A stretch of DNA of 64,000 nt. Source: Dicyema japonicum. Its lineage: Eukaryota; Animalia; Dicyemida. The stretch covers positions 251,583 through 315,582 of the forward strand of contig RDEW01000036.1 of NCBI GenBank assembly GCA_011109175.1, in the 5' to 3' direction. How positions within the stretch are numbered: position 1 is the stretch's first letter; every line of letters starts with the position of its first letter. This document shows positions 4,416 through 60,402 of the stretch, in pieces. A program made the translations under genes and the position numbers. Below the pieces are notes generated by a model, which ran no database searches, was not told the origin of the DNA, and saw only the letters and a list, made by a program, of their open reading frames with translations.

Positions 4416-5015
4416 ATGCCTAAAAATAAGCCTTCCAATTTTAAAAAAGCTAAAAATATTTGTGCCAAATATCCCAAAGAGTTTTTCAATTACACCGAAT
4501 GAAATGCTTTATTGTAAATCATGTGAGTTACCCGTAACTTGCAAGAAACAATTTTTTGTGAACAAACACAGGGAAACACAGAAGCACTCTTCACAAATAA
4601 ATACATCCACAAATAAAAAACAATTGAATATTGTTCCAAATGAATTCTTTTTTTGGAACCGACGTAACGGAAGCATTTGTATCCGCAAACATTCCACTGT
4701 ATAAATTGAGGAATCGAGCAATTATCAACTTATTCGAACGTATTGGGCATCCACTATCTTCAGAGTTTACTTGCCGCAATATAGTAGAAATTTTAGCTCA
4801 ACAAAAGATGTCCAAAATAATTAATTTAATTTCAAATAAGAAAGTTAGTTTGAATGATTTAATTGTTAAGGTTTTTTGATTGTTGACGAAACTGATGTTG
4901 GGATAAACAAATTTGTTAATTGTCTAGTTGGAACGTTGGCAAATCTACAAAGCTCTTACCTAATAGATTGTATAAAAATTGATTTTTCTCCGAATTCGTC
5001 TATCATCAGTAGGGT
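4416..5015 (+). mobile_element. hAT-like (CGGBP-type zinc finger) DDE transposase, 5' fragment with a probable 27-nt intron
   Basis: N-terminal CKSC..HRETQKH finger, then VSANIPLYKL and KK|VFLIVDETD once 4844-4870 (GT..AG) is removed and a 1-nt indel in the T-run is allowed. Confidence 0.7.
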
Positions 5016-5304
5016 GAATGTTTTTTTAACCTAAAAAATTAACTTTATTAACCTAAAAACTAAAAAAATTTAACTTTATAACTAAACAATAAAAACACTA
5101 AAACTTTTTGTTACACATACAAATTACATAATTTTCTAAATTTTCTAGTAGAAAATGTCTGTTGGATCTTAGAAAATTCTTTATTTCAGAAAAACATCGT
5201 TCAACCGAGCACTAAGTTGGCCAACAATTCAGGAGTAATGAATACTCGGCAGGAGATATGTGTGAATTTTTTTTAAGCACTCCCGGGAAATCAAAAATTA
5301 ATTA

Positions 5305-8245: not shown

Positions 8246-8389
8246 AATTAGTCATTTTAATTATGTTTGAAATATCATTTTTGAAGCCTTTTAATTATGT
8301 ATTCTTTAATAAATTGGTGTCATTTCCAAATTCCAACGATTCTAAACCATTACATTATTATCTAGAAAAAATAATTGTTATATCGCAAA

Positions 8390-8610
8390 ACTCAATGAAT
8401 TTTCATCAAAATGAATTTTGATGGGAATTTACAAAATGCCTTTTTTTGCCTTTTCTCGCATTTTATATTACACAAGCAGAGTCGACAATATAGCGCACCA
8501 TCCTCAAGAATCATAAATTCTTTAGAATAATACTTTACAATGGCCATAGCTTTAATTTGGTACGATTTTGCTATCTTAGGTATGTCAACCAAAAATTTTA
8601 GTAGCAAAAT
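8390..8610 (-). mobile_element. CGGBP-type hAT-like transposase, 5' fragment
   Basis: KYYSKEFMILEDGALYCRLCLCNIKCEK, homologous to the zinc finger at 4462-4600. Confidence 0.55.
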
Positions 8611-9170: not shown

Positions 9171-9462
9171 TACCCTAACCCATTCTCTTATTCACCCTAA
9201 CTCATTATCTAATTCAAACTAACTCCTAATTACCCTAATCCATTTTCTAATACAACATAACTCATTCTCTAATTTACCCTAACACATCTTTTAATTCACC
9301 TTAATCCATTCTCTAATACATCCAAATCCATTCTCTAATACACCATAATTCATTCTTTTATTTACCCTAACACATTCTCTAATACACCATAATCCACTCT
9401 CTAATATTCCTTAACTCCTTCTCAAATAGACCCTAATCCATTCTTTAATTCACCCTAATTAA
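9171..9462. repeat. Degenerate 22-bp tandem repeat, ~13 copies, consensus taatccattctctaatacaccc
   Basis: Directly visible periodicity. Confidence 0.85.
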
Positions 9463-9466
9463 TCTG

Positions 9467-9779: not shown

Positions 9780-10883
9780 AACTTAGTTCGCCCTAATCAG
9801 CAGTCAAATTATTGATGACACATTTCGGAACATTAATGTTGAAAGAAACAATTTTTCTCTTTTTATTACCGATGCTGCTCCATGTATGGTTTCTGCAGGA
9901 AATACTCTCAATTTATTATGTTCTAGTCCTACGGATCGCTACACGAAATGGAGACCCTCGTGAGCGCTTCTGGTTATTTGAGCGAATCTAGCTCGCTATC
10001 CTGAGAGGGAATAACCAGACAGTCAGGTAAGCCTCTATATAACCGTTACTCTACTTTATTTCTTCAATAAAATTTAAACATTCTAGTCTATCCATATCAC
10101 ATGTTTTGCTCATTTAGTGCATAATTGTGCACTTAAAATAAAAGTATATTATCCCAAAGTCGACAAATTGATTGCTTGTATTAAATCACTTGTTGTAAAG
10201 AACATTTATCAAAGACAATTGTTTAAAGAAATTGGGGTACCCACCAGAACCAATAGTTACGAGATGGGGGAGCTGACTTAAGGCTGATTTTTACTATGCT
10301 ACAAACCTGCCAAATGTTATTCAAATATGCACTTCCTTGGAATGAGATTCTTTGCTCATTAAAAGAGCGAATTCTTTTTATTCATGAAGATCTAAGACGA
10401 AAATATCACAATATTCACCCTTATTACATTGCTTGATGACTTAGAATCGACCAATTTTACTATAAAGCATACAATTATTTAAAAAGATTGGATTTTAAGG
10501 AATACGTTTGTGGAATAAAAAATTATATTAATAAAAGGATGAATTCTAATGACATCACAAAAATAATGAATTTCGATGATCATTCCTTTAGATTATTCTT
10601 TGTTGATTGAATGTCAGGCTACATCGTGCGCAGTGAAACGATCATTTTCGATTCTTAACAAAATTTTATCCAAGGATAGGAATTTTAAAGCGGATAATGT
10701 AAAATAATATTTAATTGCGAATAAACGATTAATAAAATTACTTTAAATTTTCATAAGCGTAGTTTATGAAAATAAAGTTGTAAATAGTATTTTTTAGGTC
10801 AATTTTTAAAATTGTAAGATCAATTAAATTGAATATTTAAGGGCAATTTTTTACTTATTTAAGTCAATTAAAATGTTGCCCTA
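9780..10883 (+). mobile_element. CGGBP-type hAT-like transposase, 3' part, degenerate
   Basis: ITDAAPCMVSAG, HITCFAHLVHNCA, IVTRWGS, SILNKILSKDRNF; possible terminus ttgcccta at 10876-10883. Confidence 0.7.
9929..10080 (+). mobile_element. CRE-like element, extreme 3' fragment inserted in the hAT-like transposase
   Basis: GDPRERFWLFERI*LAILRGN; 8-bp TSD ttctagtc at 9921-9928 and 10081-10088. Confidence 0.8.
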
Positions 10884-11990: not shown

Positions 11991-14900
11991 ATGAACAATC
12001 TAATTCGTTTGTGCAAGGTAAATAAGTCATCTAAACATTTCTTCCTCACTCAGCGAAACAGTAATGAGGGAATTTACATCACTCCTAACAGAATTCTCAA
12101 ACTGAGTTCCATTTTTGCCTTAGCTTAGACTCCTCTCAAATTGAAAAACTCGTACCAAACTCAACCAGAATCCTTGAATCAGTGGGCTTTCTTGGAATTC
12201 ATCGTTCACAGAGTGACTTGACCACTTATTTTTAGATTATCGATATCTCTGCTTCGTTCGGGATTCCTCTCTAGTGTTGTCTCTTAACGATGTCCCCGTC
12301 TTCTCCCTTGGTGGAGTCACTTTTATCAAAATTGGAGAAGACTCTCAGAATGAAGCATCAGAAATCTCCGAAATGACCAAATTTTTCACGTGTGGGTCGT
12401 TCTACTACTCCTCGAGTGCTCTCAGAGACAAATTCGACATCACTTTAAATCAAGTCGCTTTCAACGAGAAGGCAAAGACAAACGTAGACTTTTTGTGGTT
12501 TCACATGTTTTATTACTGAGGGAATGGGGAATTGTTGGGTCCCTCGAAATGGCTGGATTGACTACACTAAATGGACTGTGGACCTCATAGCAGGCTTCTT
12601 TGGTTCAAAGACTATCTATTTTGGCTCAAAGACAGCCCGGGCTTGCGTCATTTCTAGGATGAGTCGTGAGAGGGCAGGTACACGGTTCTCAGTTCGCGGA
12701 ATAAACGACGAGGGAGCCGTGGCAAACCCACGTGGAGACAGAACAGGTATAAAAACGGTTAATTTAGATTGTTTGGTTGTCGGATTCTCGTATTTTCTCA
12801 TTCCTTATACTCAGAGGCTCAGTACCCATTTTCTGGGAACAGTCGGGGACACAGGTGGGAGCCCACAAGGTGAATCTGTCACGGAGTTTTGAAGCCACAG
12901 TCCCCGCGTTTTACAGGTTTGTCAAATTAGCGATTCAGACACGTGCAAAAGATCACGCAGTCCTATGGAAGCATTTTTGTGCTGAATCTACTTGGAAACA
13001 GTCCCGGGGAGTTTGTCTTGACCTATAACCTACAAGTATTAGTGAACCTTATTTTAGGAACTCATAAAAGAGATCATCAAATTCGAAGGGACGCCTAATT
13101 TTGGGGAAAAAATATCCAAAATTGACGATTATATAAACTTTGACTACCATGCCTATTCATCTATAAAGTCGGGGTCAGAGAAAGATGCCCAGTTCGCCAA
13201 TTTCATGAAACAGATTTCCTCTTTTCTACAGAAGACCGGGTTCACGCACGGGAGGGGAGAAGTCACCAGAAGACAGACTGGGGTAATTCGTGTGAACTGC
13301 ATCGACTGTCTGGACCGCACAAATTGCATGCAGAAAGAAATTTCTCTCCAAGTCATGCTAGATAAGAATTTTAGGTTCTGAGGGAGCAGCTGGCTATGAT
13401 AGGAGTCGAGTCTCTGGTGGCCACAAAGTTTAGAGATGCTTTTGTAGGACTTTGGGTGTCTAATGGACACTCTGTGAGCAAACTCTATGCGGGGACCGAC
13501 TCACTAGAGTTTAAGAAAAACAGAGTCTTGGTCTGTGTGATTGTAGTATTCCAATGTTCTGCGGACTGCTGAGAGAGCAATTCAGAGCACTATATTTGAC
13601 TCAAAGAAGAACAACGCCATCATGTATTTATTGAAGGACTCACCTATGACCGTAAAACACCACCCCCTCCAGTCATCGCTTGGAAACATTGTGAGACCAC
13701 AACTGCTTAAAAGTAGACGTCTTACTTTATTAGCCCCTTTCCTTCATTGAATCTCTCAATCGAGAAACTGGGAATTTTTGTAGAAAAAGAAAACTTAGAG
13801 TGTTCGTAGGCACTTGGAATGTGAATGGAATGTCAAACTATCAGAGTATCTTCTGTGAGGGAGACATTGGTTTGTGGCTACTAGAAGGACCTGAAAAAAC
13901 CCGCCAAACGTTTAAATATTAAGTAATTTTAGTGGGACGGGATATCTGGCTGCAAATGAACCAGATTTGGCCAACGACATATTCGCTATTGGATTTGAGG
14001 AAATGGTGGACCTGAATGCCACCAATATTATCACTGGTGGAGGGTAATGGTCTGTTGTTCATTTAGTAACTCCAAACGGTTATACTGGAGTGAAGAGATT
14101 AAGAAAAAGATATCACAAAACGAGAAATTTTGTTTGGTTACTTCCCTTCAGTTGGTTGGTGTGTGTCTGTTTGTTTTTGTTCGACAATCACTTCTCTGGC
14201 ATGTAAAGTAGTTTTGAATATTTTTTTTGGGATGTGGTCACTGGGAGTGTCAAGACGGGTGTGGAAGGGACTGTTGGCAATAAGGGGGCTGTGGGAATCA
14301 GTATGAAAATCTTTAACACGAGCATTTGTTTTGTCTGCTCCCACTTTGCAGCTGGACAGTCGAATATGGCTGAAAGAAATTCAAATTTTAGTGAAATTTT
14401 TAACAAAATGACTTTTAATGATGTTGTGAGAGTTATAATGACTTAGTGGCTCATAAATGACCATGATTATGTCTTTTGGTGTGGAGACCTCAACTATAGG
14501 ATCGATCTCTCCAGAGAAGTCGTCCTGAGTGAGATATCTAAGGCAAACTGGTCTGCTTTGCTAGCAAAGGATCAACTTCAACAACAAAAGATGATGGGAA
14601 ATGTAGTTTTGGTGGTCTTTTTTATAGGTTTTCCGGCACTTTTTTGAAGGACCTGTAAATTTCCCGCCAACTTATAAATATGACTTGTACTCCTCAGAAT
14701 ATGACACCAGTGATAAGTGTAGAGTTCCCGCGTGGACGGACAGAGTCTTGTGGCGCAGTTTGGCTGGATGTCTCCTTTGTTTTTAATTTATAGTGTCGAA
14801 TCCATCTGAAAAAGGTCGTCTAGTTTACTATGGACGTGGTGAGTTGGTCACTTCTGACCATCGGTATTATATTTTTCTTATGCAGACCTGTTGGTGCCAT

Positions 14901-15438
14901 AATTGAGATTAATGTTAACGAGGCTGTCCCTTCACTGCTGGAGAAGACGGTTATTTCCATACTTTCTCGTTTTCCACCTTTCGATGGCTGTATTCAGGTG
15001 TCCCCCTACCTGTCTCAGTTGGAAGAGACCTATAGGACTCATTTTGGACGTATTGGGGAGATCCAGGAGATTATGTTTGTATCATAGTCATTCCAGTCCT
15101 TTGGGGGAAAAGCTAATCATCGGATACTGTGATCCTATTAGTCTAACAAGACTCTCTGAGATTGGGAATATTCCAGTTTCTGTTATTTGAGTGATTTTCA
15201 GATTAACGGGACAAAGGTGGAGATTAATTATCCCCTAATGAGAAACTGGGTGGACTTTGTTCTCAAGTTTTTCGGTATTAGGACTTTTGTTCCCACTCAA
15301 TCTCATTTGGTCCCTTCTCCATCTCAGTCACGACCATTGCTGCTTCAGAGGCCAGGACAGATCGATAAGTATCAACTTGGACTTCCTGGGAGTTTTAGGG
15401 ATTTGTATGGACTTGGAGATCCAGGATCTCCTCCGTGA
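11991..15438 (+). CDS. SYNJ1: Synaptojanin (SAC1 domain, inositol 5-phosphatase, C-terminal DUF1866/RRM-like region), many 21-24 nt introns
   Basis: [93 protein letters not shown]. Introns include 12213-12235, 12747-12767, 12917-12938, 13036-13057, 13352-13374, 14864-14885. At least two homopolymer frameshifts. SYNJ1 versus SYNJ2 cannot be resolved. Confidence 0.93.
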
Positions 15439-15908: not shown

Positions 15909-16440
15909 TCACCACCTCACCAAAAAATCTTTTTCCTTCCACATGTTTTTCCAAAAAGCTGAACATTCCTCAATCTCAAAATTGTACACAGAGCTGCGGC
16001 CTTCCTCTCTCATCTTATAAAAGCGCCTTCTATTAAGCTCAAAGCATAAATTGTCTTTTCGAAATTCTTTTCTCGACTTATTCATCCTAATCTTTTTTTC
16101 AACAATTTTAATCATTTCATTGATTGTACACAACACTCTTTCCAGATCTCCTTTTTTTGACTTCTTGTAAGCATAAGCAAACAAAGGTTCTCTTGTTGAG
16201 TCATCATACTTCTGACTTCCCGATGACCCCACTAGTACACTGATTTTCTCAGCGTGATTCTCTAGTTTTGTAAGTCGCCTATTCATTGATTGTAGCCAGT
16301 CGCTCTCCTTGTGAACAGTAGCAGTAAGTGTTTCATATGAGCACTGTGTAGCATAAAGAATATCTGTAATATCTTCCATTGTATTCGAAGGCATACTATT
16401 GATATAGTATCTTCCATTGTATTCGGGGGTATACTATTGA
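15909..16440 (-). mobile_element. R4/Dong-like element, N-terminal fragment
   Basis: FELNRRRFYK..EECSAFWKNMW aligns with FYRNI..ECL-TFWTTIW at the 5' edge of the 1782-4294 element. Confidence 0.7.
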
Positions 16441-16444
16441 TCGA

Positions 16445-17943
16445 GAAAATTATATTGCCTTTGGTATCACATGGACTGGTAACATGGATTGCCCTCTACC
16501 ATTTTTTGTTATTTGCGGTGAAAAACTTGTGAATAGTGCTATGGCTCCAACGAAACTTAGACGTCATTTCTCCACCAATCACTTGAACTTTCGAAGAAAA
16601 AAATAAATTGGACCAGAATAAATTCCAAGCATCCCGTTTTACAAAAATTCAAAATAAACGAAAAAGCACTGCATGCTAGTTATGCTGTTGCTGCGATTGC
16701 CGCTAAAATATGAAATCGCATACTATCGCCGAAACTGTTATTTTGCTTGCATCCAAAGAAGTAGTGAAGATAATGTTCGGAGAATTTTGCTGCCGCTGAA
16801 CTCAACTTAATTCCTATTTCTAATAATTCTGTGAGCAGACGCATCAAGGATATGTCTGATGACATTAAAACCACTGCGAATAAAAAAATCTGTGTTTTTT
16901 GCGCATCAAGAGGATGAAAGCCCAGATATTAACAGGAAGAATGCAACTCTTTGTTTTCATTCGATATATGAATGATGAATCCATTGTTGAAGACTTTCTT
17001 TGCTGCAAAGAGGTGCTCGGAACAACAAAGGGATATGAAATTTTGAATCTTATAAATTCATATTTGAAGATATAAAGTTGGATTGGAAAGCATGTTTGGG
17101 TATTTGCACTGATGGTACTTCAGCAATGACTGGGCAATTTAAAGGCTTTGTTTCTATTGCGAAAAATAAGAATCCGAACATTATTCACAAGAATTGTTTT
17201 CTTTATCGCGAGGCATTGGTCGCAAAAACTATTGGTCGCAAGAACTTAAATTTACTTTGGACATAGTTGTAAAAATAATTAATTACATCAAAATGAGGCC
17301 TTTGAAATTGCGACAGTTCTCGAAACTTTGTGAAAATGCAGAACATTTAGTTTTGATTTTGCATACTGAAGTAAGATGGCTCTCAAAGGGAAACATGTTA
17401 ATTATTTTCTATTAAGACACGAATTGTTGGCTTTTTGTATACAAGAGAAGTTAAATGACTTTATTGAATGCCTCAATTATGAATTTTGGTGTTGCAAATT
17501 AGCATACCTCGCCGATATTTATCATGAACTCAATGTTCCAATAGCAGCATGTAAGGAAGAAATAAAAATCTATTTTTATATTGATTAGTTTTTGCTGATT
17601 GTCAAAAAAATATCCTATTTGGCAAACAAAGCTTTAAGAGTTTTGGTCCAGTTTTCAACGACTTATCTCTGTGAAAGTGGATTTTCTGCATTAACAAATA
17701 TAAAGCGTAAAAACGCGCGAACCTAGTGTATGTGGACGAAAACCTGCGTTTATTTCTGTCAAGGACAAGGCAAAATATTAAGAGCTATGCAAGAGACGTC
17801 AGCCTCAACCATCTCACTAACTAGCATTTTATTTTCTTTATATTAGTAAAATACTGATAATTGTTAAAAACTATATAAGGGTTCCGTATAAAATGAAAAA
17901 TGTCTATAGGGTTCTGTGTTTTCAAAAAGGTTGGGAACCACTG
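16445..17943 (+). mobile_element. hAT (Charlie/ZBED5-like) transposon, degenerate, apparently intronless
   Basis: [46 protein letters not shown]; right TIR ggttgggaaccactg ends at 17943. Confidence 0.88.
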
Positions 17944-37482: not shown

Positions 37483-38132
37483 AAGTGTAATAAATTTAAT
37501 TTGTGGTGCAAATTATTAGAATATAATTTAGTACAAACTTTTTTAATCCCAGGTCCTTCCAGGTTAAATCATCTCTGATTTCTTTGAGTGACAATGAGTC
37601 TCAAAAATATGGAATTGCTATTTAAGTGTTTCTCGACTGATTCGCGTTCCGTGAGATTGCTGTTGGGGACGACTGTAGCGATAAGTAAAAAATCTTTGTT
37701 CAATAACCTTAAATGTCTAACCACATTCAGAAACCATTATTTTTTGGAAACCTAGTTAGTTGTTGTGCAATTATTAATTTATTTAAGATTTCCATTATTT
37801 AAAATAGATTCTCTTCCTCTTTGGATCAAACAAGATCATCCTAAAGTCTCCATAGGAATGCCACCTTCTGTGTCCCTATCTACTTAGGATCTTAATTGAA
37901 ATTCTAAAGTTGAGTGCGCACTTTTTTCGACAGTGTTTTTAGGTCGTTTAACATCAAATGTGAGTCATTTGTTGAGGAGAACATCCAGTATTTTATACGC
38001 ATACTTTTCAAAGGTTTTTGGAATAATATATGCTCGTATAGAGACATCCACATTAAGCGATTATTCTTTACTACAAAAATAGTGAATATCCTCCATATTC
38101 GGATCTATATTATGACTCTTGTAAAAGTTATA

Positions 38133-39221
38133 CAGTAAACTCTCCCAAATTTGCCATTTTTGGTTCCAGCATTTTTTGCGACAAATTTGGGAATTGGGAA
38201 ATTTCAGAATTTAATCAATAATTTTATAATAGTTATTGGGGAACTTCTCAACGATGAAAATAACTAAATTTGATTTTATTACGAAAAAAATTATTTGTCA
38301 AAAAAGGCGAACAGTGTTTTGGCTATAAACAAGGAAAAGAAAGACTCACTGTTCTTCTATGCTGCAGTTTAATTGGAGAAAAACTTGACCCATTGATTAT
38401 TGGAAAGTATAAACAACCTCGGTGCCTAAAAAATTTTGATGTCCAAGATTTTGGGTTATTGTATTCGTCTTCAAAAAATGCATGGATGACTGGAAAGACT
38501 TTTATGAGTTGGCTTACACTAATAAATGAATTGTTTCGCAAAAACAACAGAAAAATATTATTATTGCTTGACAATGCTGGATGCCATAAAACTTTTGAAT
38601 GTTCAAATATCGAATTTTTTTACCGAAAAATACAACGCCATATTTACAACCATTGGATATGGGAATAATCAAAGCCTTTAAGAATTATTATTCAAGTTTC
38701 TTAATGGAATTTTTGTGTTTTCACGATGTCGAAAACGATTTTGCACATTCTATTGCAAAATTAAACTTGCGTCATGTCATGATGCTAATTTCGAAAGGTT
38801 GGGAGAAAATAGATGCGGCATGTATTGTTAATTGTTGGCCGTGATTCTTATGCGACAGACTGTCTAACAGATCAACTTCTAAATCATGATATAGACGAAA
38901 CAATTGATGTAGAGTGCGAAGAGTCCTAAAGTAATATTTATAGTGGATATTCAGAAACGGAGAATATTGAAAATGTCGTAGAGGAAACAAAGGATCTGCT
39001 AAACAATTTGGAAGAACAAATTTCACATGTGGCACCAAAAATGCTGCGAGACTATGATTTCCGGCTAAAATTAACAAATAATATACGACAAAACTCTAAA
39101 ATTAAAATAACTGATTATTTTGGCAAAAATATTATTTGATGTTAATTATTGATTCAATTTCAGAAATAATAATAAACCCCTGTTTTTGGGGCACTTGGTG
39201 CCCCATTTAGGGGTAGGACTG
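38133..39221 (+). mobile_element. pogo/Tigger transposon with mismatched ends, apparently intronless
   Basis: KERLTVLLCC, SKNAWMT, LLLLDNAGCH, LQPLDMGII. Left end cagtaaactctc matches the 57842 family; right end ggggtaggactg|ta matches the 41208 family. Confidence 0.85.
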
Positions 39222-39222
39222 T

Positions 39223-40100
39223 ATGTCCTGTTTTACTATTGTCAATGTATATATCCCACCTATTTACTTGTGTCTTCCTAAATATACGCCGACTTACACT
39301 TTTTCTATTGAAAATTTAATCCTATGTGGTTTAATGCTCATCATCCTGCATGGCTATTTTCTAACAAACCTGATAAACGTGAAGTGCAAATTCTGCGTGA
39401 TTAGTTCTACATACTCGTACTCGCTGTACTCAAAGTTCAGATTATTCTAATAAATCCACGATATCTCCCTCTGTTCTCAAAGTATCGCTCTCGACGCTCA
39501 ATGAGATGTATTTTATGATCTCTCAACTGATCACAACCCGATTTTAATTTCCTTCAACAATCAACCACGAAGACGTATATAAACTTAACCATGGAAAGTA
39601 GGATTCTCACAGAAACGAGACCGATCGCGTACTCAGACTTTTCTTTTGTTCTTTCCGCTCTTTTCGATGCTGCTGTCGAGAAACTGTCTTCACAAACTGT
39701 CTAATTGCTAAAAACAAAATTAATTCCCCGTGGTTTCATCGCTAATCATGGCCTCTACTACCTTTATGAGATTATTAATCTTCTCAAAGAACACAGAAGG
39801 GTCAAATCGATGACTGTGGTAATAGTAGAATCGAATATCTTTCTGAAATCAATAAACCTATTGACGACCTAATCTTAAATACAAGACCTATCAATGGAAT
39901 GAATATTTATACTGTAAACTCTTATACTTGATCCCATATCTTTCGGAGAACCCTTAAGAAGATACATTCCAAACATCCGTCCCCTCAATCGCACTCAACT
40001 AGTCTTTCAAGAAAAATTGTGCTATCCTTCCTTGACCAAATCAACTTATTAATGATTATGCGAAAATAAGCCACATTCATACCCAAAAAGACTCCCTATA
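39223..40100 (+). mobile_element. Vingi-like APE fragment, highly degenerate
   Basis: IVNVYIPP and STDHNPI remnants. Confidence 0.55.
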
Positions 40101-41207
40101 AGAGACTGAATACTCTAAAATCAAAATACCTTTTCATTATTCCACAATTTCTAATTATTATGGATTTATCCCTTTCAGTGGAGACAAATCTAAGCCTTTT
40201 TGTATAATCTGCAAAAATTCTTTGGCCAATAGTTCTATGAAATTGTCAAGATTAACACACCATTTAAGGACTAGACATCCAAAACTACCCTTCAAAAGTT
40301 AATCACTCATCATGCTCTTGCACGAAAAAGTATTCCTTTTAACCTATTTCATAGATGGGTTACTTGCATCCTACAAAATTGCCCATATCGTTGCTAAAAA
40401 TAATGCTACCCATGTTTCGGGTGAATCGTTAATAATACCTTCTATCGCAGTTGTTTTACAAGATATGTTGGGACATAATCCATCTGAAATTTTACAAGTA
40501 GTGCGATCATTTTGATGTTCTTAGAATTTACCTTTGAGTAATGATACGATTCGTCGCCGAATTGACGAAATGGCTGAAAGTGTCGAAGATAACTTTAAAA
40601 ATATACTTAGAAAAACAGTTTTTTCCTTGCAGATTGACGAATGTCTGGTATGTGTAATAAATCTATATTAATGGCCTATGTTAGGTAGGTATTTTAAATA
40701 ATATTTGTTTAGATTTTTTGACGAACAAGAAGTTTTTTTTGTGAAGAGGTTTTGTTTATCAGACCTTTGATAACAGTTTCTACCGAAGAGTCAATTTTTA
40801 TTGTATTGAAAACGTATTTTGAAGAAAAACAAATTCCATTTTAATCACATGTGCTACGGACGGTGCAATGGCCATGATTGGGAAGTACAAAGGATTTGCG
40901 TTTTTTTGAAACAAAAATGTCCGAATTTAATTCATATTCATTGCGTATCACACCTCCATTATCTGGTTTCAAAAAAAATCTCCGCTTTTTTAAATTAAGT
41001 GCTAAATCTCGTCATAAAAACGATCAATCGAATTAAAACAAGTCGAAAATCTGATAGGATTTTTAGGAAATTTTGTATAGATAGGAATGAAGATTATTTA
41101 AGACTCTTGTATCATTCTGAAGTTTATTTTTGTTTTTTATATTCTTTAGGTTCGCTGGTTGTCCAAAGACACTGCTTTACAAAGATTTGTAAACCTTTTA
41201 CCAGCTA

Positions 41208-42128
41208 CAGTCGAACCCCGGGGTGGGGCATCAAAGTGCCCCAAAAAGCGGGGGTGCCCTCCAAAACCGGGGTTTGGTTCAAACTATTGATTTATGGTTG
41301 ATTTAAAACACTTTATGTCTTAAGGTTGAATCAAAGATGTTGTGTTTTTCTGAAGAAAAAACAATTTAACATTTGAGTATTCCAATAAATAATGGCATGT
41401 AGCATTATCCATTATTAAAAGTATTTTTCTATCGTTAATCTTTGAAAGCCACATTTTGAAAATTTCTCTATTCATCCAGGAATTTTTTGACTTTTTTTTC
41501 ATATAAATACAGAATTTTTCACAATCAAAATCTATGTTAAAATATAATTAAGCAAACTTTTCATACAACTAAGTGATTTGTATTTTCCAATAACAAGGGG
41601 TCTTAATTTATTTCCTGCTGCATTACAGCAAAGGAGAACTGTTACTCTTTCTTTACTGAATTTTGTACCATGACATGTTTCTATATATTCGACATAAGAT
41701 CTTGAAGAAAATTTTTTAACATACAAAGATGTTTCATCACAGTTAAAAATATTTTCATGACCATAAGTTTTCAACAAATTATCGAATTAAATTATCGAAT
41801 TGAAAGAAAAATTTGAAGGCATTACACAAAGACAATTATCACGTGTTCAAAAATAATATTATTCAAAATAATATTATATAATAAAATATTAAAATAAATT
41901 AGTAAAGTGCCCCATACTGGGGTTTTGATAATTTCCAAATTTGGAAATTATTATTTTTTTAAATTTATTAACAATAAAATATTATTTATTAACTATGGGG
42001 GAGAGCGGCTACTGACATCACTGATGGAAAATGTGGAAATTATTGATGGAAAATGTACTAAAAAATAAAATCGCCCCAAAAAACGAGGGTGCCCCAAGAC
42101 GGGGATTTATTGAAGCGTGGTTCGTCTG
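41208..42128 (-). mobile_element. pogo/Tigger deletion derivative with a 26-nt intron, inserted at TA in the hAT
   Basis: TIRs cagtcgaacc / ggttcgtctg, TA TSD; removal restores RFVNLLPA|ILDFLESE of the hAT; NIFNCDET, KERVTVLLCC, MDNATCH. Confidence 0.88.
41960..42030 (-). mobile_element. CRE-like 3' tail remnant
   Basis: attaacaataaaatattatttattaactatgg matches the copy A 3' end at 20543-20574. Confidence 0.6.
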
Positions 42129-43069
42129 TATTTTGGACTTTCTTGAATCGGAAATTGAAGAGGAATAAGCAAGATCAATTTCAGAAAATGAGAAATATAT
42201 CTATTATTTAAATTGGATTTTTGCTAAGTTGAATGAAATTTCCTTGAAATTGCAGAGAAATTTTGTAACTATGTTTGACGTCAGAGTTACAATAATTACA
42301 TTTTGTGAAAAGTTAAAGAATTATAGAAATAACTTTGAACCAGGAAAATACAATTTCTATATCCAGAATGTGAAGCATTTAATTTGATATAAAAATTTTT
42401 GTTGACCATCTAATTAATTTGGAAAAGGAAATGACAATCAGATTTGAAGACGTGATTAATATGGAAATACCAAGATGGATGATAAATTTTTTTTGACTAG
42501 CACTGTAGAGGCGCAAATGGATTTGCAAGATGAATTTATTGGTATTTTTATCATTATTATTTTTATAGAAATTAAATATAATTATTCTTACAAGATTTTG
42601 TTTGAAAACCAGGATTTGTCTACCTTTTGGCGAAAAAAGGAATTTAAAGACAAATATCCAAAGATTTGGGAACAAATAATTAAAATTTTATTATGTTTTC
42701 CGACGACATATCTTGTGGAATCAGGATTCAGCGTAGTAAACAGGATATTGAGCGATGAACGTAACAAGCTTGATATCTGCTCGCGAGGAGATGTCAGATT
42801 ATTTTTAACACGCTTGGACCCTGATATTCAGAAACTAATTAAAATGCATGAAAACCAAGGCTCTCATTACATAGTTAAAAAAAGATTTTAAGTCCATTAA
42901 TTAAATTAAAAGAATTAAATAAGTCTTTGTTTCTTTGGTACACGAAATAACTTGGTTTGGTACACTGACTTTTTTTTGGTACACCAAAAAAAGGTTGAGA
43001 ATTACTGCTATAAATCATCTATAAAATCTAGGACCGAATGGATTTTTTGCTTTAACTAATTTAATCAAA

Positions 43070-49047: not shown

Positions 49048-51038
49048 TTATTATTATTATTACAGCACTTATCGCCTTGCCATAATAGTTATAGCAAAGC
49101 ATGTGCAATACAAGAAACAATGTTATTAGTTAGCCTCTTCCATCCTCCACGGTTACACGCAGTCGATCTCAGCATGTCCAGATCGTCTCCCGTCTTTAGG
49201 CATTTCTTCATCCTTTGGAGGTCTTTGTGCAGCATGATAGGTAGGGTCATCCTTGGTCTGCCACGGAAGCATTTGCCCTCGAACATGAAATGGTCCTCCA
49301 TCGCCACATTAGCCGGGGCAGTAAGATCCATGCGTAGTACGTGACCAAACAGTCTCCACCGGGCGTCAGTGATTTCCAGGCTTAGAGGCCTACTCTTGCA
49401 TTTTTTGTAAATACCGGTATTCGAGATTCTGGCTGGCCACTGCATGCCAAATAATACTCTAAGCTGTTTTCTGTGGAACCCATCGAGAGCCATTGATTCC
49501 GCAACTGTACAGGCCCAAGTACCAGCATTGTATGTCAGTATCGGTTTCACAAGTGCATTTTACATGCGTATCCGCAGATTGACATCTAGTCCTTTCAGCC
49601 ATCCCTTTTTGAGTTTTCGCATTGCTACTCCTGCAAGTGTTTTCCTTTTGATGATGTCTTCTGTGTCCCCCAGTAGGGATCCAAGCTTATTAACATGTCG
49701 CCAACGTTCATTAAGGATGTTGTCCATTCTTTTGATTTCCGTGATTTCCGTTTTGGCCCGGTTAACGATGAGGAACCATTCCCCCAGTTTGTCCGGTGCA
49801 TTTTCCAGCAGATGTGTGAGAGCTTCTGTATCCTCGGATATAAAATCCACATCATCCGCGTATACGACTTCGTTTATTTTTCCTTCATAGCAAGTTCTTA
49901 GATCCTTTAGTGCAGCTTCGAGATATATCACAAATAGTAAGGGGGAGAGGGAGTCTCCCTGAGGAGTGCCGATTGTAGTTTTGAATGGTCGGGATAGAGT
50001 TCTCCCAATTCGGACTGACAGTTCAGTACTTGAGAGAAGTACTCTGATTATCCGTAGCAATGATTGGTCCACAAATTGATGAAGGACAACCATTAGCTTG
50101 TGTCGGCTAATGGTGTCGAAAGCTCTTGACATATCGATCCCCAGGATGGTCGTGGCATTTTTGTATCTTTGAGCCGTTGCACACCGCCACCTGTGGCTCC
50201 ACAGAATGTCCGCTGTCGACCTTCCTTCACGAAATCCACTATGGCATGCTGATAGGTAATTTCCTGCAGGATGTTTTAAGCGGTCCAAAGCAACAGATGC
50301 AAGAACTTTTCGTAATGTGTTTAACAATATGACTGGGCGTAGGCTTTCTAGTGGTCCCTTTGGTTTGTTAGGCTTTTGTATAGGTATCAATGTCCCTTTC
50401 CCCAGTGGTAGGACAGAGTTGGATGTAAACATTCCATTTAACAATGTCGCAATGGTTTCGAATAGACGCATAGGTCCATATTTCAGCAGTTCGGGAGGGA
50501 TGTTGTCTGGTCCAGCGCTCCTGTGATTCTTTAGCTTACTGCACGCACTCTGAACTTCCTTAGATGTGATAATTGTTTCCAGCATCCGCGGTTCTCCGAT
50601 GAAAGGGGCCAGTTCTTGGCCGTTCGCATTGAACAGTTTTTCAAAATGGGCAGCAATCAATTCGATCTGTTCGTCTGGTTTTAAGATAAGTTTCCCCTTC
50701 CCATCCATAACATGTACTGTCGCTTTTTTCTTTCCTCGCATTAGTCGGACTGCAGCGAACATTTGTGCATTGTCCTTTAGTTGCTCCAGCTCTCTAAGAT
50801 GTGATAGGAAGACATCCTTCGAGTGTTCATTATTAAGCTTCATGATTCTTCTCTTGATAATATTTCGTTCAGTTCGTAGTTTGTTTTTGATATGTATATC
50901 CGTCGTGTTTAGACTCTGTATCCATATTTCTCGTTGTTGTTTTGCCAGTAATAAGGAGTCTGGATGGCCAAGTGACATATTTCCGGTTGTCTGCCGTCTC
51001 ACTCCAAGGTGGGTGTTTGCGGCAAGGCAAATAATGCT
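49048..51038 (-). mobile_element. RTE LINE, 5'-truncated, young-looking (480-aa open RT)
   Basis: ORF 49560-51002; 12-bp TSD ttagttggaata (49036-49047 and 51039-51050). Confidence 0.93.
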
Positions 51039-52559: not shown

Positions 52560-54150
52560 CTCCCATTGTCCTCCATCTCCGGGATCTTATATTACTGCCT
52601 AGAAATGATTAAAGTGGAAAGTTTCTGAAATTAGCATTTAATGTCACTCCACTTGACAGGATGATATTGATCGATATTTTCAGAAACTCAAATATTTTAT
52701 TTCACTAACTTTTTCGTAGATAGATATTTTCTGCGTGAAGAGAGAAGCACTTCCGACTTCCTGTGTTCTTTGTACGATTTTTTTTGTGTAAATTTTATTA
52801 GATTGTTAACGTCTCGTTGAGTATAGTCATCCTCGGGGGAAGTTTCTTCGCCCTTTGCAACAATTCGGATGGCTTTCTACACTTCTCCGGTACTACGGTT
52901 GCGATTTACCTTTGTAAGAATTTGATTCCACTTCAATTTCTGGGCCTTGAACTCTCTGGCCTTTATTTCGTTGTTTAGAGTTCTGATCAGGAGTTTCGTT
53001 TCTAATGTGATCCAATTAGATTTTTTGAGGTGATTTCTTTCTTTTACCAATGCCGACTTCTCTCGACCATTAAAGGAATTTAGACGATGCTTGGGAATAG
53101 CCAGCCGATCTTTCTTCTAGGATTGTCCAGTAAAGTATTTGATCCCATTTTTTAGCGATTTGAAGCTGTCCAAGTAACAATTCTTCAGTCTATCATCCGA
53201 GATTGCCCGATACAATTCCCAATTAGCAACTTTGTAATTATAATTAGTAGGTGCTTTTCTCACTTTGACTTCGCTCTTGATCTTCATCACAATCGGGTTA
53301 TGATCGCTTCTTGCTTCGTAGGAAGACAAACCAGGTAATTTTCGATGAAAGTGATGTGGAGCAGAGTGTTACGTCGGGAGAGGTAGGCTGATCCGTCTCT
53401 CTGAGTGGGGTCCTTGTATTTTTCGCTGGGTCATTCAGTATCGTTAGGGAGTCCCTTGTCCACAACAATAGCTTCCTTCTCGTGTTGGCCTGTTGGGTTG
53501 ACAACCAGAAGAGGTGCTTTGCGTTTAAATCTCCACATATGATGATCTTTTCGTAGATAGCCAACCTTGATAGGTTTGGAATAACATTGTCCTTTGTGGA
53601 GAAGCCGGGAGGAGGCAAGTTGATATTCACGAAACACAGACTTCCTTTCGTTGTCCCAAACGAGATTCCAATTGCCTCAGTAACCTCGTCGTTTCCAAAA
53701 AGTTTCCTCATTTCCGAAGTAATGTCTCTGCATTTCAGGTTCTTTTTGAATAAAGTAAGTAGTCCGCCCCCTCTTCTCTTTTTACGGTCCATTTTGATAG
53801 CCTCGTATCCAAGGAATGAAGGAGTGGAATCATTCATGCGGAGTTTAGTTTCTTGGATCATAGCCATGTCGATCTTCAGATTTGCCAGGATTGAACGCAG
53901 TTCCTTGACCTTGCCTTTAATTCCGTTGATGTTCAATTGAAGAGCAGTAAATTTCCTTTCTCCACAATGGGCTGAGGATTTTTTCCGGGAATGTTTGGAC
54001 TTTTTTGAAGCACATCGCAAGGGGTCGATAATGACCCCAGGAGGAAAGGGTCTAATGGTCTTTTTCGGGAGGGCATTAGAAGCCCTCTGGTCGTTGTCAA
54101 ATCCTTTTGAATTTTTTGACTTGGTGGGGCACATAACGCCACGATACTTG
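52560..54150 (-). mobile_element. Vingi-like LINE 5' part (APE and linker), no 2A motif seen
   Basis: ORF 53298-54134: LQLNINGI, MIQETKL, RRGGGL, ICGDLNAKH, SPDVTL; then SDHNPI; head gtggcgttatgtg. Confidence 0.85.
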
Positions 54151-54164
54151 AGATTAATAAGTTT

Positions 54165-54250
54165 ATTTAGGGTTTTTGGTTAGGGTTAATGTTTAGGGTT
54201 AGTGTTTAGCGGTTTTGGTTAGGAATTAAGGGTTTTTGTTAGTGTTTAGA
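54165..54250. repeat. Degenerate TTAGGG-like low-complexity tract
   Basis: ttagggtttttggttagggttaatgtttagggttagtg. Confidence 0.6.
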
Positions 54251-54469
54251 GTAAAGTTTCATATATATGGATAAAAGAACAAGGCTTAAATTTAATATTT
54301 GGTAACGTTGTATTTGAGTGACCTATATTTTTTCAAGAAAATAAGAATTAATAAATAATTATATCAGCATATTTAGAGTAACTTTCTCTTTTATATTTGA
54401 ATAAATTTGAATAACATGGTGAGAGCTGGTAAAAGAGCATAATTCCACAAGAAGAAATAATAACCAAAA

Positions 54470-54740
54470 GTCGTGGAAATCGACGAGTCTAAATTCTTCC
54501 ACCGTAAATACCATCGCGGTCAATGGCGGGAAGGTCATTGGGTTCTTGGAGGAATCGAGCGCGGAACAGGGCGCTGTTTTCTCGCAGAGGTTCAAGATAG
54601 GTTTATTTAAAAATATTGAACATTGTAGATCGACGGAAACCTTGAAAGATGTGATTACAAGACACATACTTCCTGGGACGAGGATTATAACCGATGGATG
54701 GCTGGCATATCAGTCAAAAAAATATAGGTCACTCAAATAA
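54470..54740 (+). mobile_element. Merlin/ISXO2 (IS1595-like) transposase fragment with a 28-nt intron
   Basis: VVEIDESKFFHRKYHRG..WVLGGIERGTGRCFLAEVQDR|STETL..ILPGTRIITDGWLAY; intron 54601-54628. Confidence 0.88.
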
Positions 54741-54844
54741 ACATTACCCTTATTGCGTATATTTAAGTTTCTGCTATAGAAAATTTTGTAATTCTATTCT
54801 AAACGTTTTAATTTGATTTCACAATGTATAAAGTCTCTGAAAAC

Positions 54845-54874: not shown

Positions 54875-55004
54875 TGTCGCACGCACTGTGAGCAACCATG
54901 CACAACGCGCAACAAATCATGTGTCAATCAATGTCATATGTCAAACAATATCACGATTAATTACTGAAATAAGATAATCTAGAGATAATTTATTACATGA
55001 GACA

Positions 55005-55120
55005 ACGACGCACGTGAGACCCGGTGGCTACTCCAGTTGATCTCTGTTGCAATCGTGAGAGGCAACGCAACGTCGATAATGTAGGCGGGGTCCACTTTGG
55101 ATGGATGGCAGTTTTAAATA
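55005..55120 (+). mobile_element. CRE-like 3' fragment
   Basis: RETRWLLQLISVAIVRGNATSIM. Confidence 0.8.
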
Positions 55121-55384
55121 TGCTTTACTGGGGATAAATTAACTGATTATTTTTCTAAAATTTGATTAATTTTTCGAAATTTATTACATCCATATTAATT
55201 ATATTTTTTTGACTAAAATATTTTTTTACATCTAACTTCTACACGATTGTTTGATAATAAACTTAAGACTTCTACATTTTCACTGTATGGACTCTCAAAT
55301 TTATTCAGCCTTAGAAAAGGATTAGTTCCTATAATTTCTTAAAACTCGTACCTACATTTAATTATTTAATTTTTTTTTAAACCA

Positions 55385-57170
55385 ATAACAATTTATTGAA
55401 GAATAAAACCAAATAGTTAAAGGCTACTGGCTGCTCTCAGGATTGAGAGCGCATTTCCCCTTACGATCTGTAAGGAGATGCGCTCAATGAGCCAGCCCTT
55501 CTCTCAGACATCCCTCTTCCTTTTAGCACTAACGATCCAATTTTGTAGAGCAGGGCTAACGACCTGCTTCCTATGACTCCCGAAGTTTCAACTGCTACTG
55601 ATTCAAATGTGTACTGCTCGCCGAGGCATGTGTACTTCTTTGCTTTAAGTATTTCTGCTTTCTCTGCAGCTGAGCCTGGATTTGTCGCACTCATTGTAAT
55701 ATTGGAAGGGGAGAAGCTATCTACGCAGGTGGCATCCCAGGCCAGGTACTTCCCAGCATCCCACGGGAACAGAGTCGCCGGCCTTCTGTTTGCCGTGGCA
55801 AGTCCTAGGGGCTCCATCTGGACAGGGAATCCGGCAGCTTCTAGTCCCCACGCAATAACCTTGTTGATTGCACTATGTCTCAGGCTCCTTCCAGCGCTCA
55901 TTCGGCAGGAAAGTGCGTGGAGTCCTTTTGCGTCGACTACTCCTCCACATCTACAGCGATGGATTGCGCAACATCGATTCCGAGGCGGACGCAAACCCCA
56001 ATCCTCGTGGAGTCATCGTCCAGAAAAGTTCCGAGTGAAATGCACGGGAATGCTTTGAGCCATGCACCGCTTACGTTTGTTGATGCGGTAGCCAGACAAG
56101 CCAGACGATGCTGGTCGAGTTGTGGTTTTAGCTCATCGATGGTCCTCGAACATACAAGTTCGTTCCAGTCTCGTTGTTTGTTATAGTTCTTCGGGAGTCC
56201 CAAATTAAGTCCAATCCAAACATCGTGAGCCATGCATGCCATTGGTTCAGTGTCCGATCCGTTAATGTAGCGTAGGGTCTGGTGAACTAGACCACGGGAA
56301 GCATATGTCGAAGACAGAAAGGCTGGGAGGGCGAGTTCAAGTGGCGAGCGTATCACAATTCCTCCATAACGAAGTGGTAACTTGCATTGGGTCCACCCTG
56401 CTTTATCCAGAGAGATGTTAAGTGTTTCTTCAACAGAGGTCCTCAGCTTCTCATCGATAACTCTCAAGAAATCCATGTCTGTGAAACATGGGGATGTCCG
56501 TAGAAAAAAAAGGAGTCGTGGTGTAAGGTGAAAATTCTTGAGGATGAAGAGAGAAATGTGGGATCCAATGCCTTTAGATTGTGCGTGAGCAGCTGCACGG
56601 ATTCACTCTTCTCCTCCAGGACAGTTGACAAGTCATACAGAGGAGATCCGAGGAAAATCGCCTTTTCTAGTCGGGTGACTTTGATGTCCTGGAGGCAAGT
56701 AGAAATGGTCGTTATTGCGCGTTCAAAGGTGTCCTCTCCACAGGTAACGTTAATAACTTCGCACTTCGATGGATTCGGCTCCAGTCCGAGTGCCGCGAGG
56801 GCAGGGATGACGCGTTTAACTTCTTCCACAACAATTTCCCAACTCCCTCCAATGGTCGCGTCATCAAGGTACCATAAGTTCAAGGAGTTTTGATCGCAGA
56901 TGATACACAGTCGATTCCCAAAGCAAAGAGTAGAGGGCTAAGTGGGTCTCCTTGTTGGACTCTAGTCTTGGACTTGATGGCGTGTTGTCCGAAGATCAGC
57001 GTACACGGGGAACCATATGAGAGTCTGACCATCCTGCTGATCTCAGGAATCCTAGAGACACTATCTTCTATGATTCTATCCTTCGGATGCTATTGAATGC
57101 ATTACGTATGTCCAGTTTGACTATAATTGAATCCTGCGCGTCAGGCTGGCAACAAAATTCCGGATTGAAT
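55385..57170 (-). mobile_element. CRE-like REL retrotransposon, 5'-truncated
   Basis: LWYLDDATIGG, GAWLKAF, CRCG..HALSC, WDATCVD, VETSG, ERISLQIVRGN. Confidence 0.88.
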
Positions 57171-57841
57171 GTATTACTGTTATTATTTAATAAAAACTTG
57201 ATCCCCTACGTGTATTTACTATGATGAACATTTATCTTTTTGTTCATTTTCTTAAAATAAGGTGAATTCAAATTTGTTTTTATGAACTTAAGTTGAAAGT
57301 TTTCTAATTTTAAAATCATTTTTGTAACCCATTTCACAAACAGACTTTGTAGATTCATTATTTGTTTCTTCTAACGACTCATCGAACGACATCAGTATTT
57401 ACTGTCTCATCGAAAAATCATTCTCCAAATCTATGTAAAAATTTTAAAAATTCAGCCAACCATTATTTAGTTTAACAGTATTAAAACTAGGAATTCCTCT
57501 ATACATCTCAAATGGTGTTCTTCCACTCGACGAATGAACAGTTATGTTATACATATAAGTGGCACTAGGTAACATTTGAATCCAAGATGTTTCAGCGTTT
57601 TTTGCCATCATTTTTGACAGAATCCGTGTAATGGTTTGATTGAATCGTTCTATGATATCTTAAAATATATACAAACAACTAAATACCTTGAGAACGAGGA
57701 TTGTTTGGTCTTTCATTAACTTGTTTAATATTAACTTCATTAGTAAGTGCCCGAATATCAGAATTTTTAAATTCTGTACTATTGTCTGATTGTAATTCAT
57801 GGAATATGCTTTTTTAATTCCATTGAAACCTAAATTAAATA

Positions 57842-59702
57842 CAGTAAACTCTCTCAAATTTGCCATTTTTGGTTCCAGCGAAATTGTGGCAAATTTGAGA
57901 ATTGGCAGATTTCAGAATAAAATTTTATTTGAATTTTTAATTAATTTATTAAAGGATAATTAAACTTTTAAAATTAATAAATTTTATTTTTAAGGAAAAC
58001 AATATTTTTAACCAAAGAAACAAAAATTAATTAAATTTTATTAAAATTATACTTAATTCCCAATTGCCTCTTATTAGAATTTGTAATATTTTCTTTACAT
58101 CTTCTTATAGAAGTAATGAATTAGGCATCATTGTCATTTTCAATGTTTTCTAGAAGATAATTTTCAATCTCTCTTAATTTTAAAAGCATTTCAGCCTTGT
58201 TTATTGACCCATGAACTTATACACTACCGGATTCTTCTTGTTCCTCCATAGCAATTAATTTCTCTTCATCATCAATTGCATCCTTTTCACTGTAATCAAT
58301 TGAAATAAATTCTTCTAATTCAATAGGATCATAAATATCTGTTCTGGATACGATTTCATCGGTTAAATTTATGTTGGTAAGTTCTGATTCGCATTCTGTA
58401 CGTTCTAGACGTTTAAAACAGTTTGAAATTGTTTGGAATTTTTACAAACAATACAGTATCCATGAGATTTAACTTCTTATATGATTCATATACTGAGTTC
58501 TCGCATTCCAATATATCCGTTAAATATAGTAATTTGTGCCTTGTAAAATGAACTTTGAATGATTTGATGATTCCCAGATCCATAGGTTGAATAAGTCCTG
58601 TACTTTGGAATAAACATAATTTTAATATTTTCCAAATAAAGAGGTGGGCAATGAGATAGACAATTATCCATTAATAACAAAATTGATCTTTTTTTCAATT
58701 GATTGTCAAAATTCGTAATCCAATTCGCAAAAATTGATGCTGTCATCCAAGCCCTTTTGGAATTGTAATAAGAAACAAAGGAATTATAATCATAATTCTT
58801 GAAACATCGGGGCATTTTTGGTTTCCCGATCAATAGTGGTTTTAACTTATGTGTTCCTGACATATTGGCGCACAACATGACTGAGACTCTATCTTTAAAA
58901 TTTTTATATCCGTCAAAACGTGATTTACAAATACTCCGAGATTGAATCAATTTATAGAATATTCCTGTCTCATCCAAATTGTAAATATTTTCCGAAGAGT
59001 AACTTTGAAACTTCAAAATCTTTTTAAAATTGATCAATATCCACATGTTTTTCAGTGCGCATTTTTCCGTGTAATTTACGCATTCGAAATCCATGTTTTT
59101 TTTTAAATTTGTCCAAAAACCCGTAAGAATTTTTAAAATTATACAACGAAAGTTCTGTAGCGAAAAATTATGCCTTGTGTAATATTAGAGACTCGTTCAA
59201 TATAGCACATTAAATGTTAGAGTAAATAGTGTACCTTTTGATTCCATTGAATCCATCCAATCTACTAGATTTTCATTAAGCTCCGGGTATTTTAACTTTT
59301 TGCAAGTTTTTAGTTTAGGATTTCTGTTCTTAAACTGAAATAAAAGCGATTCTGCATTCATTAATATTGCATTGACTGTCTTCTTGATATTCTCCTTTTA
59401 AAATAGAAGAAAATCTGTTGCATATCGTCTGACATGAAACTGAATTATTGGTTTCTTTATACCGCTATATATCCACTTTTTGAGCTATTGAAAGTCTGGT
59501 GTAGCCTCCAACAAAAACATTCCGAACCATGCTTGCTTTAAATTATTTAAATTTTTAAAAATATTTTAAAAAATAAATATAATATTTAAAATGTTGGCAA
59601 ATTTCAGAATTGCCAAATATCATTAAAAATAGAACAAATCGATAAAATGGTAAATTTCAGAAATGGCAAATTTAAGAGTGGCATATTTGAGAGAGTTTAC
59701 TG
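57842..59702 (-). mobile_element. pogo/Tigger transposon, both ends intact, apparently intronless
   Basis: 24-bp TIRs cagtaaactctctcaaat(t/a)tgcca, TA TSD; NIYNLDETG, KRAWMT, LLMDNCLSH. Confidence 0.92.
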
Positions 59703-60402
59703 TATATGATTTTAAGCATCTTACTTCAAAACCAGATTTGTTTTTTAATTTTCTTGTTATGACCAACTTTGAATATACATCAATTACAGTGAGCATCCAT
59801 TTGTATTCATCTTGACAGAATAAAATCTTTTCAGATCAATAAGATCTATTTGATTCCTTTCATTTGGTTTTAACGCAATGATATGATGTTCTTCATCACT
59901 TATCTATTTAAATATTACCAAAAAACAAACTTTTAAAGGGGTAGAAAACTTACAGATTTCACAGAATTAATTATTCTACTTATAACATTTCTTTTAATGT
60001 TGAAGTAGTGTTTATTGAGAGATCCTCCATTTTATTCATTCCAAGATGAGCCTGGTTATGGAGTGCTGAGGTCAAATCATCCATCTCATTGTCATTGTCC
60101 ATACAAATGACAAGCTTGTGATTTCCATTCTGATCTTTCAGATATATTTTGTCGTTGATCATCATGAAATTTCTTGCTTTTGGTAGAAGGCAAAATTTAT
60201 TATACCTGTTGGTACTTGAAAATACTTGGTCTTTAATAATAAGTTCGATTATTTCATATTCCTCAAAACATTTTATATAACCTCTGTATGCAGGCATCCT
60301 TAGATTTACGAATATTTTCGCAAAAGTGCTATCGAATGAGATGGCGTGATTCTGACATGACATTGATTGACACATAATTTGTTGCGCGTTGTGCGCGCGA
60401 CA

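Follow-up and report, generated by a model that had tools for sequence, protein, structure and literature searches.

Do the transposons of a genome whose own introns are extremely short carry introns of the same kind and, if so, where did these introns come from? We examined this question in a window of 64,000 nucleotides of Dicyema japonicum DNA (the whole stretch analyzed, positions 251,583 to 315,582 of contig RDEW01000036.1; all coordinates below are those of the window). D. japonicum is a parasite of the octopus kidney, and somatic DNA rearrangement has been reported in dicyemids. The assembly that holds the window consists of 67,542,437 bases in 377 contigs, and the window itself is a mosaic of host genes, many fragments of long interspersed nuclear elements (LINEs) and DNA transposons. 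Our main finding is that four families of these DNA transposons contain ten segments of 25 to 32 nt (five in a hAT, one in a pogo, one in a Merlin and three in a Ginger-like element), all of which start with GT and end with AG, and which are kept in every examined family copy covering the site, except in a few where they are mutated or deleted. We consider it very probable that these segments are U2-type spliceosomal micro-introns of the founder elements of the four families, spliced by the host and kept by DNA transposition.

Repeats make up 49% of the D. japonicum genome, in which introns are very short (PMC6736024); the text of that study does not contain the word 'transposon', and LINE-1 ORF2 copies are its sole mention of this kind. 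According to a 2026 survey, D. japonicum is the only animal besides myxobolids to have introns of less than 30 nt, its splice signals have shrunk to about 'GTa' and 'AG', and the length classes of host introns analyzed genome-wide are those of 20 to 27 nt (PMC13644364). Such micro-introns have been reported from only two animal lineages, of which Dicyema is one (PMC13644364, PMC6736024); their origin and recognition are standing questions. Transposon families have advantages here over host genes: their copies are numerous and dated, relatives without introns exist in the same genome, and dead copies are not under selection. A first-pass annotation of the window had proposed host-type micro-introns in DNA transposons of five unrelated groups. 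Four of these groups were verified in the present study, and the fifth, a CGGBP-type element, does not regain its frame when the 27 nt proposed for it are removed.

Ten segments in four transposon families

GT..AG spans of 18 to 32 nt occur 40 to 50 times per kb in this A+T-rich window, and those of a given length class modulo three cover 23 to 30% of its positions. Moreover, when open reading frames (ORFs) were chained without the help of homology, several plainly spurious 'introns' were produced in decayed pogo copies; ORF chaining was restricted to host genes, with manual selection. Given this dense coverage and these spurious rescues, the mending of a frame in one dead copy is weak evidence, and all segments might be viewed as chance GT...AG spans that bridge the frameshifts and stops of decayed copies. 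Such an artefact probably explains an 18-nt site proposed in the Ginger-like element, and perhaps also the CGGBP-type site. Three stronger tests were therefore required: presence of the segment in the whole family, a long open frame in a natural copy once the segments are removed, and an exact junction relative to an intron-free homologue. The case rests on the first and the last of these tests. The ten segments are common to essentially all copies, have exact junctions and are needed for frames of 318 to 447 codons, so that an artefact is hardly credible as their explanation. The ten segments are family-wide, unlike the frameshifts, which are private to the window copies; as a reference, the chance that a random insert both starts with GT and ends with AG is about 0.003. 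Seven junctions align to intron-free relatives, namely four in the hAT, those of the pogo and the Merlin and, less cleanly, that of hAT intron 5, while support for the Ginger junctions consists of a restored motif and an open frame.

The hAT family is represented by hAT-B (40159-43007, + strand), a dead, 5'-truncated element with a pogo nested in its exon 5. Its family has the terminal inverted repeat (TIR) CAGTGATTCTCAACC and generates 8-bp target duplications of the form nnnTAnnn (seven copies checked). The only Pfam matches of its exons are zf-BED and Dimer_Tnp_hAT, the latter at 21.9 bits with a cut-off of 21.4, and its closest homologues belong to the FAM200-ZBED5 and GTF2IRD2-like families. 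The TIR, the target duplications, the BED finger, the dimerization domain and the homologue families together place hAT-B in the Buster/Charlie-like clade. The identity of hAT-B to more than ten genomic copies is about 93%. Eleven further copies, 87 to 94% identical, are present in the genome and have the same segments wherever the sites are covered, except for three damaged instances.

The first-pass annotation had proposed hAT introns of 27, 28 and 28 nt, and possibly one of 25 nt. All four hold, as GT-AG segments found in the other copies that cover the sites, with few of them mutated or deleted. The 25-nt segment, intron 1 (40330-40354, + strand, phase 1), is seen in seven of the eight other covering copies; its acceptor is mutated to GG in copies L003 and L008, and copy L009 has lost most of it and also has a deletion at intron 2. 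Intron 2 (40498-40524, + strand, 27 nt) lies in phase and contains both TGA and TAG; once it is removed, ..EILQ is followed directly by NLPLSNDT, as in homologues. Intron 3 (40685-40712, + strand) is 28 nt long in hAT-B and 29 nt in the family. Removal of intron 4 (41122-41149, + strand, 28 nt) restores the motif H-[ST]-E-VRWLS, found unbroken in outside homologues and in hAT-A, another hAT of the window. A fifth segment (42542-42568, + strand, 27 nt), present in all copies covering it, is probably an intron as well, judging from the longer and cleaner C-terminal alignment to homologues that its removal gives.

The defects of hAT-B itself are of another kind. Compared to most other copies, hAT-B lacks an A after position 40654, has two additional T near 40733, and is short of seven bases near 40840 and of one base near 40900; DNA contigs of other hAT copies correct the differences at 40654, 40733 and 40900, and never skip the segments. 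In the natural copy L006 (G000:C121), removal of the four segments leaves 447 codons free of stops, up to an assembly gap, compared to 153 codons for the longest unspliced frame. A profile-free search with hAT exon 4 retrieved 4,320 relatives, with about 50% identity for those of full length (about 590 residues), and the spliced L006 protein aligns without gaps at all four junctions to seven hAT transposases from outside this genome.

The first-pass annotation was right in placing intron-free relatives of both the hAT and the pogo within the window. On the hAT side, the relative is hAT-A (16403-17585, + strand), a decayed and distant element that is 31 to 52% identical to hAT-B and has no introns at positions 1 to 4: tblastn stretches cross positions 3 and 4, and frames cross positions 1 and 2. 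Elsewhere in the genome, several matches to divergent hAT relatives (64 to 73% DNA identity; G000:C345:1354195-1354683, C112:298586-299076 and C367:1117466-1117964) end at or near the borders of exon 3, and the spacing to exon 4 is 15 to 26 nt shorter in such relatives than in hAT-B. They may have a shorter intron 3 or none, as this spacing suggests.

The pogo nested in hAT-B (41206-42128, - strand) is internally deleted, its full-length relatives being about 1.9 kb long. A DDE_1 transposase, a TA target duplication and TIRs of the form CAGT... define a pogo; among the pogo elements of the window, DDE_1 hits have E-values of 1e-6 to 2e-23, the TA duplication and TIRs were found at 57842-59702, and the nested copy has an empty site. 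The empty site, with a joint 41205>42129 that skips 923 nt, is found in hAT-family contigs of all four DNA sequencing runs, which implies that the pogo inserted after the amplification of the hAT. Its intron (41532-41557, - strand, 26 nt, phase 1), which had been proposed at this length, has intact GT and AG ends in all eight element copies with both TIRs, was recovered at all 12 colinear junctions of the tblastn screen described below, and yields on removal, as the single segment taken out of copy L060, a frame of 330 codons. The position of the junction could be derived from the domain profile: the exon upstream of the segment matches DDE_1 up to position 30 and extends three residues beyond, and the extrapolated start of the downstream exon is position 35, so that the split codon corresponds to position 34 (junction at about 33|34|35).

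The window holds two more pogo copies, both of them intron-free at this position. One (57842-59702, - strand), with TIRs and a TA duplication, lies within an intron of the Ginger-like element and matches positions 1-110 of DDE_1 without a break; the other (38133-38841, + strand) has a TIR of the same type and an unbroken match to positions 1-102. The spliced nested pogo aligns to these two copies without gaps across C-M-K|N-F-D, with 49% and 40% identity. As the TIR reads CAGTAAACTC... in the intron-free copies and CAGTCGAACC... in the intron-bearing family, the presence or absence of the pogo intron differs between families and not within one.

In the case of the Merlin (IS1595-like) element, the window holds only a transposase fragment (54464-54737, + strand) that matches positions 61-90 of the PF12762 profile. 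The fragment scores 18 to 21 bits, under the curated cut-off of 27 for DDE_Tnp_IS1595, which family copies exceed; a longer copy that matches the same DNA (C113) reaches 29.2 bits. As the first-pass annotation had stated, the fragment contains a 28-nt segment (54601-54628, + strand, phase 2). None of the 14 other copies lacks it, and 13 of them have both GT and AG intact. Once spliced, the fragment aligns without gaps at the junction to an intron-free relative of the same genome (L079, 57% identity), the 153-codon frame of which is unbroken at this point. Furthermore, in a genome scan with PF12762, the match begins at profile position 61 for several loci, among them copies matching the window Merlin DNA, while other Merlin families read through this position, one of them within an open frame of 395 codons. 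About a dozen Merlin matches of the same scan end at profile positions 85 to 88, a hint that a second intron position recurs among other Merlin families of this genome. At 54180-54250, immediately upstream of the window fragment, degenerate units resembling TTAGGG form a short array.

Three segments belong to the Ginger-like element, which the first-pass annotation had read as two integrases with introns of 27 and 18 nt. The 27-nt segment stands, but the two integrases form a single element (54900-60394, - strand) with later insertions: the two halves, which abut in other genomic copies, are separated in the window by the intron-free pogo of 1,861 bp at 57842-59702. Its inverted arms (54900-54943 and 60353-60394) are identical at 42 of 44 positions, and a DNA transposon bounded by TIRs is consequently a better fit than a long terminal repeat element. 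The pogo landed at a TA within intron B, a segment of 32 nt that is uninterrupted in other copies, leaving 20 nt as its 5' part (59705-59724, - strand) and 12 nt as its 3' part (57830-57841, - strand); the TIR starts of the inserted pogo are perfect, and the TA is duplicated. There is no 18-nt intron, and that candidate was rejected, as it consists of the end of the pogo and the tail of intron B. In this copy, the insertion turned intron B from a micro-intron into an intron of 1.9 kb.

Intron A (59904-59930, - strand) is the 27-nt segment; it is in phase, ends with an in-frame TAG, and is recognizable in every copy that covers it, with intact GT and AG ends in seven. Intron C (57659-57686, - strand), of 28 nt in the window and 29 nt in most copies, is family-wide, and its removal restores P-R-S-Q-G-I-I-E-R-F-N. 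Single exons of this family give weak matches to Pfam rve and H2C2. In the natural copy L094 (G000:C20), the longest unspliced frame has 150 codons, and removal of A, B and C together opens a frame of 318 codons, which spans the H2C2 finger and the integrase core with its DDE motifs, including S-Q-G-I-V-E-R-F-N.

Splicing, DNA transposition and the LINE control

Elements that move as DNA should retain their introns in every copy, and elements copied from processed RNA should not have any. LINEs provide the control. The ORF at 49563-51038 (- strand) runs uninterrupted over 492 codons, with RVT_1 positions 5-192 in one stretch, and further uninterrupted LINE ORFs are found at 1930-3189, 61449-62435 and 53301-54179. 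Three LINE ORFs match the reverse-transcriptase profile without a break (positions 1-202, 5-192 and 3-172 of 205), and one does so for the endonuclease profile (1-204 of 225). In a uniform tblastn screen, 14 LINE ORFs were compared with all copies of the window and of the loci fetched from the genome, the target being colinear matches with 15 to 40 nt of extra sequence between them. Over about 17,000 aligned residues, LINE ORFs yielded no colinear pair parted by 15 to 40 unexplained bases; the three spliced DNA-transposon queries yielded 49, of which 47 contain a GT-AG span of the exact length. The earlier claim that LINE coding regions have no introns is thus borne out, by unbroken domains and by an empty screen, as is expected for elements that propagate through processed RNA.

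The following scheme would account for these observations. The ten micro-introns would already have been present in the founder elements of the hAT, pogo, Merlin and Ginger-like families, and each transposase could be produced from a spliced mRNA only. The host spliceosome, which handles host introns of 21 to 25 nt, would also remove the transposon introns of 25 to 32 nt. DNA transposition would then perpetuate the introns in every copy, and LINEs, being copied from processed RNA, would stay free of them.

Several observations weigh against this scheme. Four sequencing runs of one sample were mapped to 36500-42499, and they behave as genomic DNA: the introns of the host asparaginyl-tRNA synthetase (AsnRS) gene are retained, and depth is repeat-like. 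A protein word search with hAT exon 4 (E<=1e-30) returned no Dicyema sequences. All copies in the window are dead, through frameshifts, deletions or nested insertions, and splicing of these particular copies is without consequence, since every one of them is defective. Intron 5 of the hAT, being a multiple of three without a stop, could be coding or read through. Finally, introns of the transposons exceed the 13 host introns of this window by about 5 nt on average and are more A+T-rich (21% versus 30% GC).

An alternative is that the segments are real family features that are not spliced, either because they are old insertions in non-autonomous lineages mobilized in trans, or because they are removed at the DNA level. 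It would agree with the genomic nature of the only runs found, with the presence of some damage in all copies sampled, and with the somatic DNA rearrangement reported in dicyemids. However, it requires ten independent insertions in four families, each of 25 to 32 nt and with GT...AG ends, in frames that are otherwise open, and no copy devoid of the segments was found among contigs at least 90% alike. We therefore regard it as improbable, and retain splicing by the host as the most probable explanation.

Intron-bearing DNA transposons have long been known, as exemplified by the P element and pogo of Drosophila, Ac of maize and Tol2 of medaka, and splicing of one intron limits the activity of the P element to the germline. 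Like these, the Dicyema families are cut-and-paste elements whose transposase mRNA needs splicing by the host. They differ in that their introns, at 25 to 32 nt, are far below the usual animal minimum, and in that four superfamilies are concerned in parallel in one genome. A role of splicing as a host switch on transposase expression, suggested in the first-pass annotation, would be conjectural. Predicted introns have also been noted in the Tc1/mariner elements Sardine, Thon and Anchois of Paramecium (PMC3464196), but these belong to a ciliate and to one superfamily, and are predictions without an analysis of gain or loss. On present evidence, the Dicyema families are a well-documented and unsurprising case of DNA transposons with introns in the style of the host, of a kind known in principle.

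Comparison with host introns and origin

How similar are the transposon introns to those of the host? Two host genes of the window, both on the + strand, supplied introns through ORF chaining: a synaptojanin-like gene (12152-15437; introns of 21 to 24 nt) and an AsnRS-like gene (35952-37481; introns of 22 to 25 nt). Thirteen introns, hand-picked as reliable, agree with the conserved motifs of the two enzymes. Host and transposon micro-introns alike have the form GT...AG, mostly with a TAG end, and are A+T-rich and shorter than about 30 nt. The claim of matching sizes nevertheless applies only roughly, since host introns measure 21 to 25 nt (mean 22.8, n=13) and transposon introns, taken at their family length, 25 to 32 nt (mean 27.8, n=10; Mann-Whitney p=5e-5). 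Likewise, the exonic AA or AG that had been reported before every site is found at nine of the ten validated sites and lacking at one; an exonic A-[AG] precedes 5 of the 13 host introns (Fisher p=0.03). With such small samples and hand-picked host introns, these differences are a lead rather than a result.

A well-known connection between mobile DNA and intron gain is provided by introners (PMC9860276, PMC12130899). There, the element itself is the intron and occurs as near-identical copies in many genes, whereas in Dicyema the introns lie inside elements and are unrelated to each other. Between introns of different groups, the mean best identity is 0.554, and it is 0.554 as well for shuffled sequences. 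No resemblance to the flanks, of the type that an origin by tandem duplication would leave, was seen among the transposon introns. Homology of the introns to each other or to local sequence, both of which the first-pass annotation had considered, was therefore not seen, and the status of introner was rejected, as the introns are not near-identical copies of one mobile sequence.

Two histories of the introns can be envisaged, to which we give roughly equal weight. In the first, the introns were gained de novo after the families had entered the dicyemid lineage, a history to which we would grant a little less than an even chance. It agrees with the existence, in the same genome, of hAT, pogo and Merlin relatives without introns at the same positions, and with the uninterrupted ORFs that encode, in their contigs, the two nearest full-length hAT homologues from outside. 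The preference for sites after an exonic A-[AG], which recalls a proto-splice site, points in the same direction. However, the intron-free relatives are distant (30 to 57% protein identity), no pair of near-identical subfamilies with and without an intron was found, and neither the introns nor their flanks offer any similarity that would show a mechanism. Moreover, no TIRs were found around the two outside homologues in their contigs, which may be RNA rather than DNA. If the introns were indeed gained in place, these families would offer a rare and tractable example of an animal acquiring introns recently.

In the second history, the introns were inherited and then shrunk along with the other introns of the genome, or arrived by horizontal transfer from another host with tiny introns; this too is a serious possibility, somewhat short of even. 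The excess of about 5 nt over host introns is what incomplete shrinkage predicts, and the divergent hAT matches that stop at the borders of exon 3 suggest that intron positions are shared by old subfamilies. Many DNA transposons elsewhere also have introns, among them P, Ac, Tol2 and the Drosophila pogo. Against this history, no intron-bearing homologue was identified outside Dicyema. Inheritance followed by shrinkage would reveal the speed of a genome-wide deletion pressure.

Pushing the idea of gain in place further, one may speculate that D. japonicum is still creating micro-introns, in selfish DNA as well as in host genes, and that its multi-copy transposon families are a datable record of intron birth. 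The slightly longer and A+T-richer introns at A-[AG]|GT would then be young ones, not yet trimmed to a host optimum of 22 to 23 nt. This extension is tentative, and we hold it to be rather unlikely.

Other features of the window

A third, small host gene lies at 51.1-51.7 kb. In the synaptojanin-like gene, chaining that admits only GT-AG introns breaks at several spots, unless GT-TG segments are permitted (for example, 12507-12534 and 14208-14229).

The CGGBP-type element, for which a 27-nt intron at 4844-4870 had been proposed, shows no recognizable homology to hAT transposases: it has no Pfam match, no Atlas match and no similarity to the hAT-B protein, and only a DETD-like motif was found. 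The 27-nt intron was rejected, since its length is a multiple of three and its removal leaves ...V-F-stop, where an in-frame TGA remains. By frame arithmetic, the two frames are joined only by a 23-nt version (4848-4870, + strand); this segment is present family-wide and might be an intron of this unclassified hAT-like element. Alternatively, the element may do without any intron, as the frame reads through when the T-run located just after the segment counts seven T. Of 12 copies, seven have T6 in this run, three T7 and two T5.

Finally, a second hAT-like coding region, at 9920-10090, is broken by about 150 bp of inserted sequence, on either side of which lies an 8-bp direct repeat, TTCTAGTC; the insert is possibly a small non-autonomous element of the hAT type.

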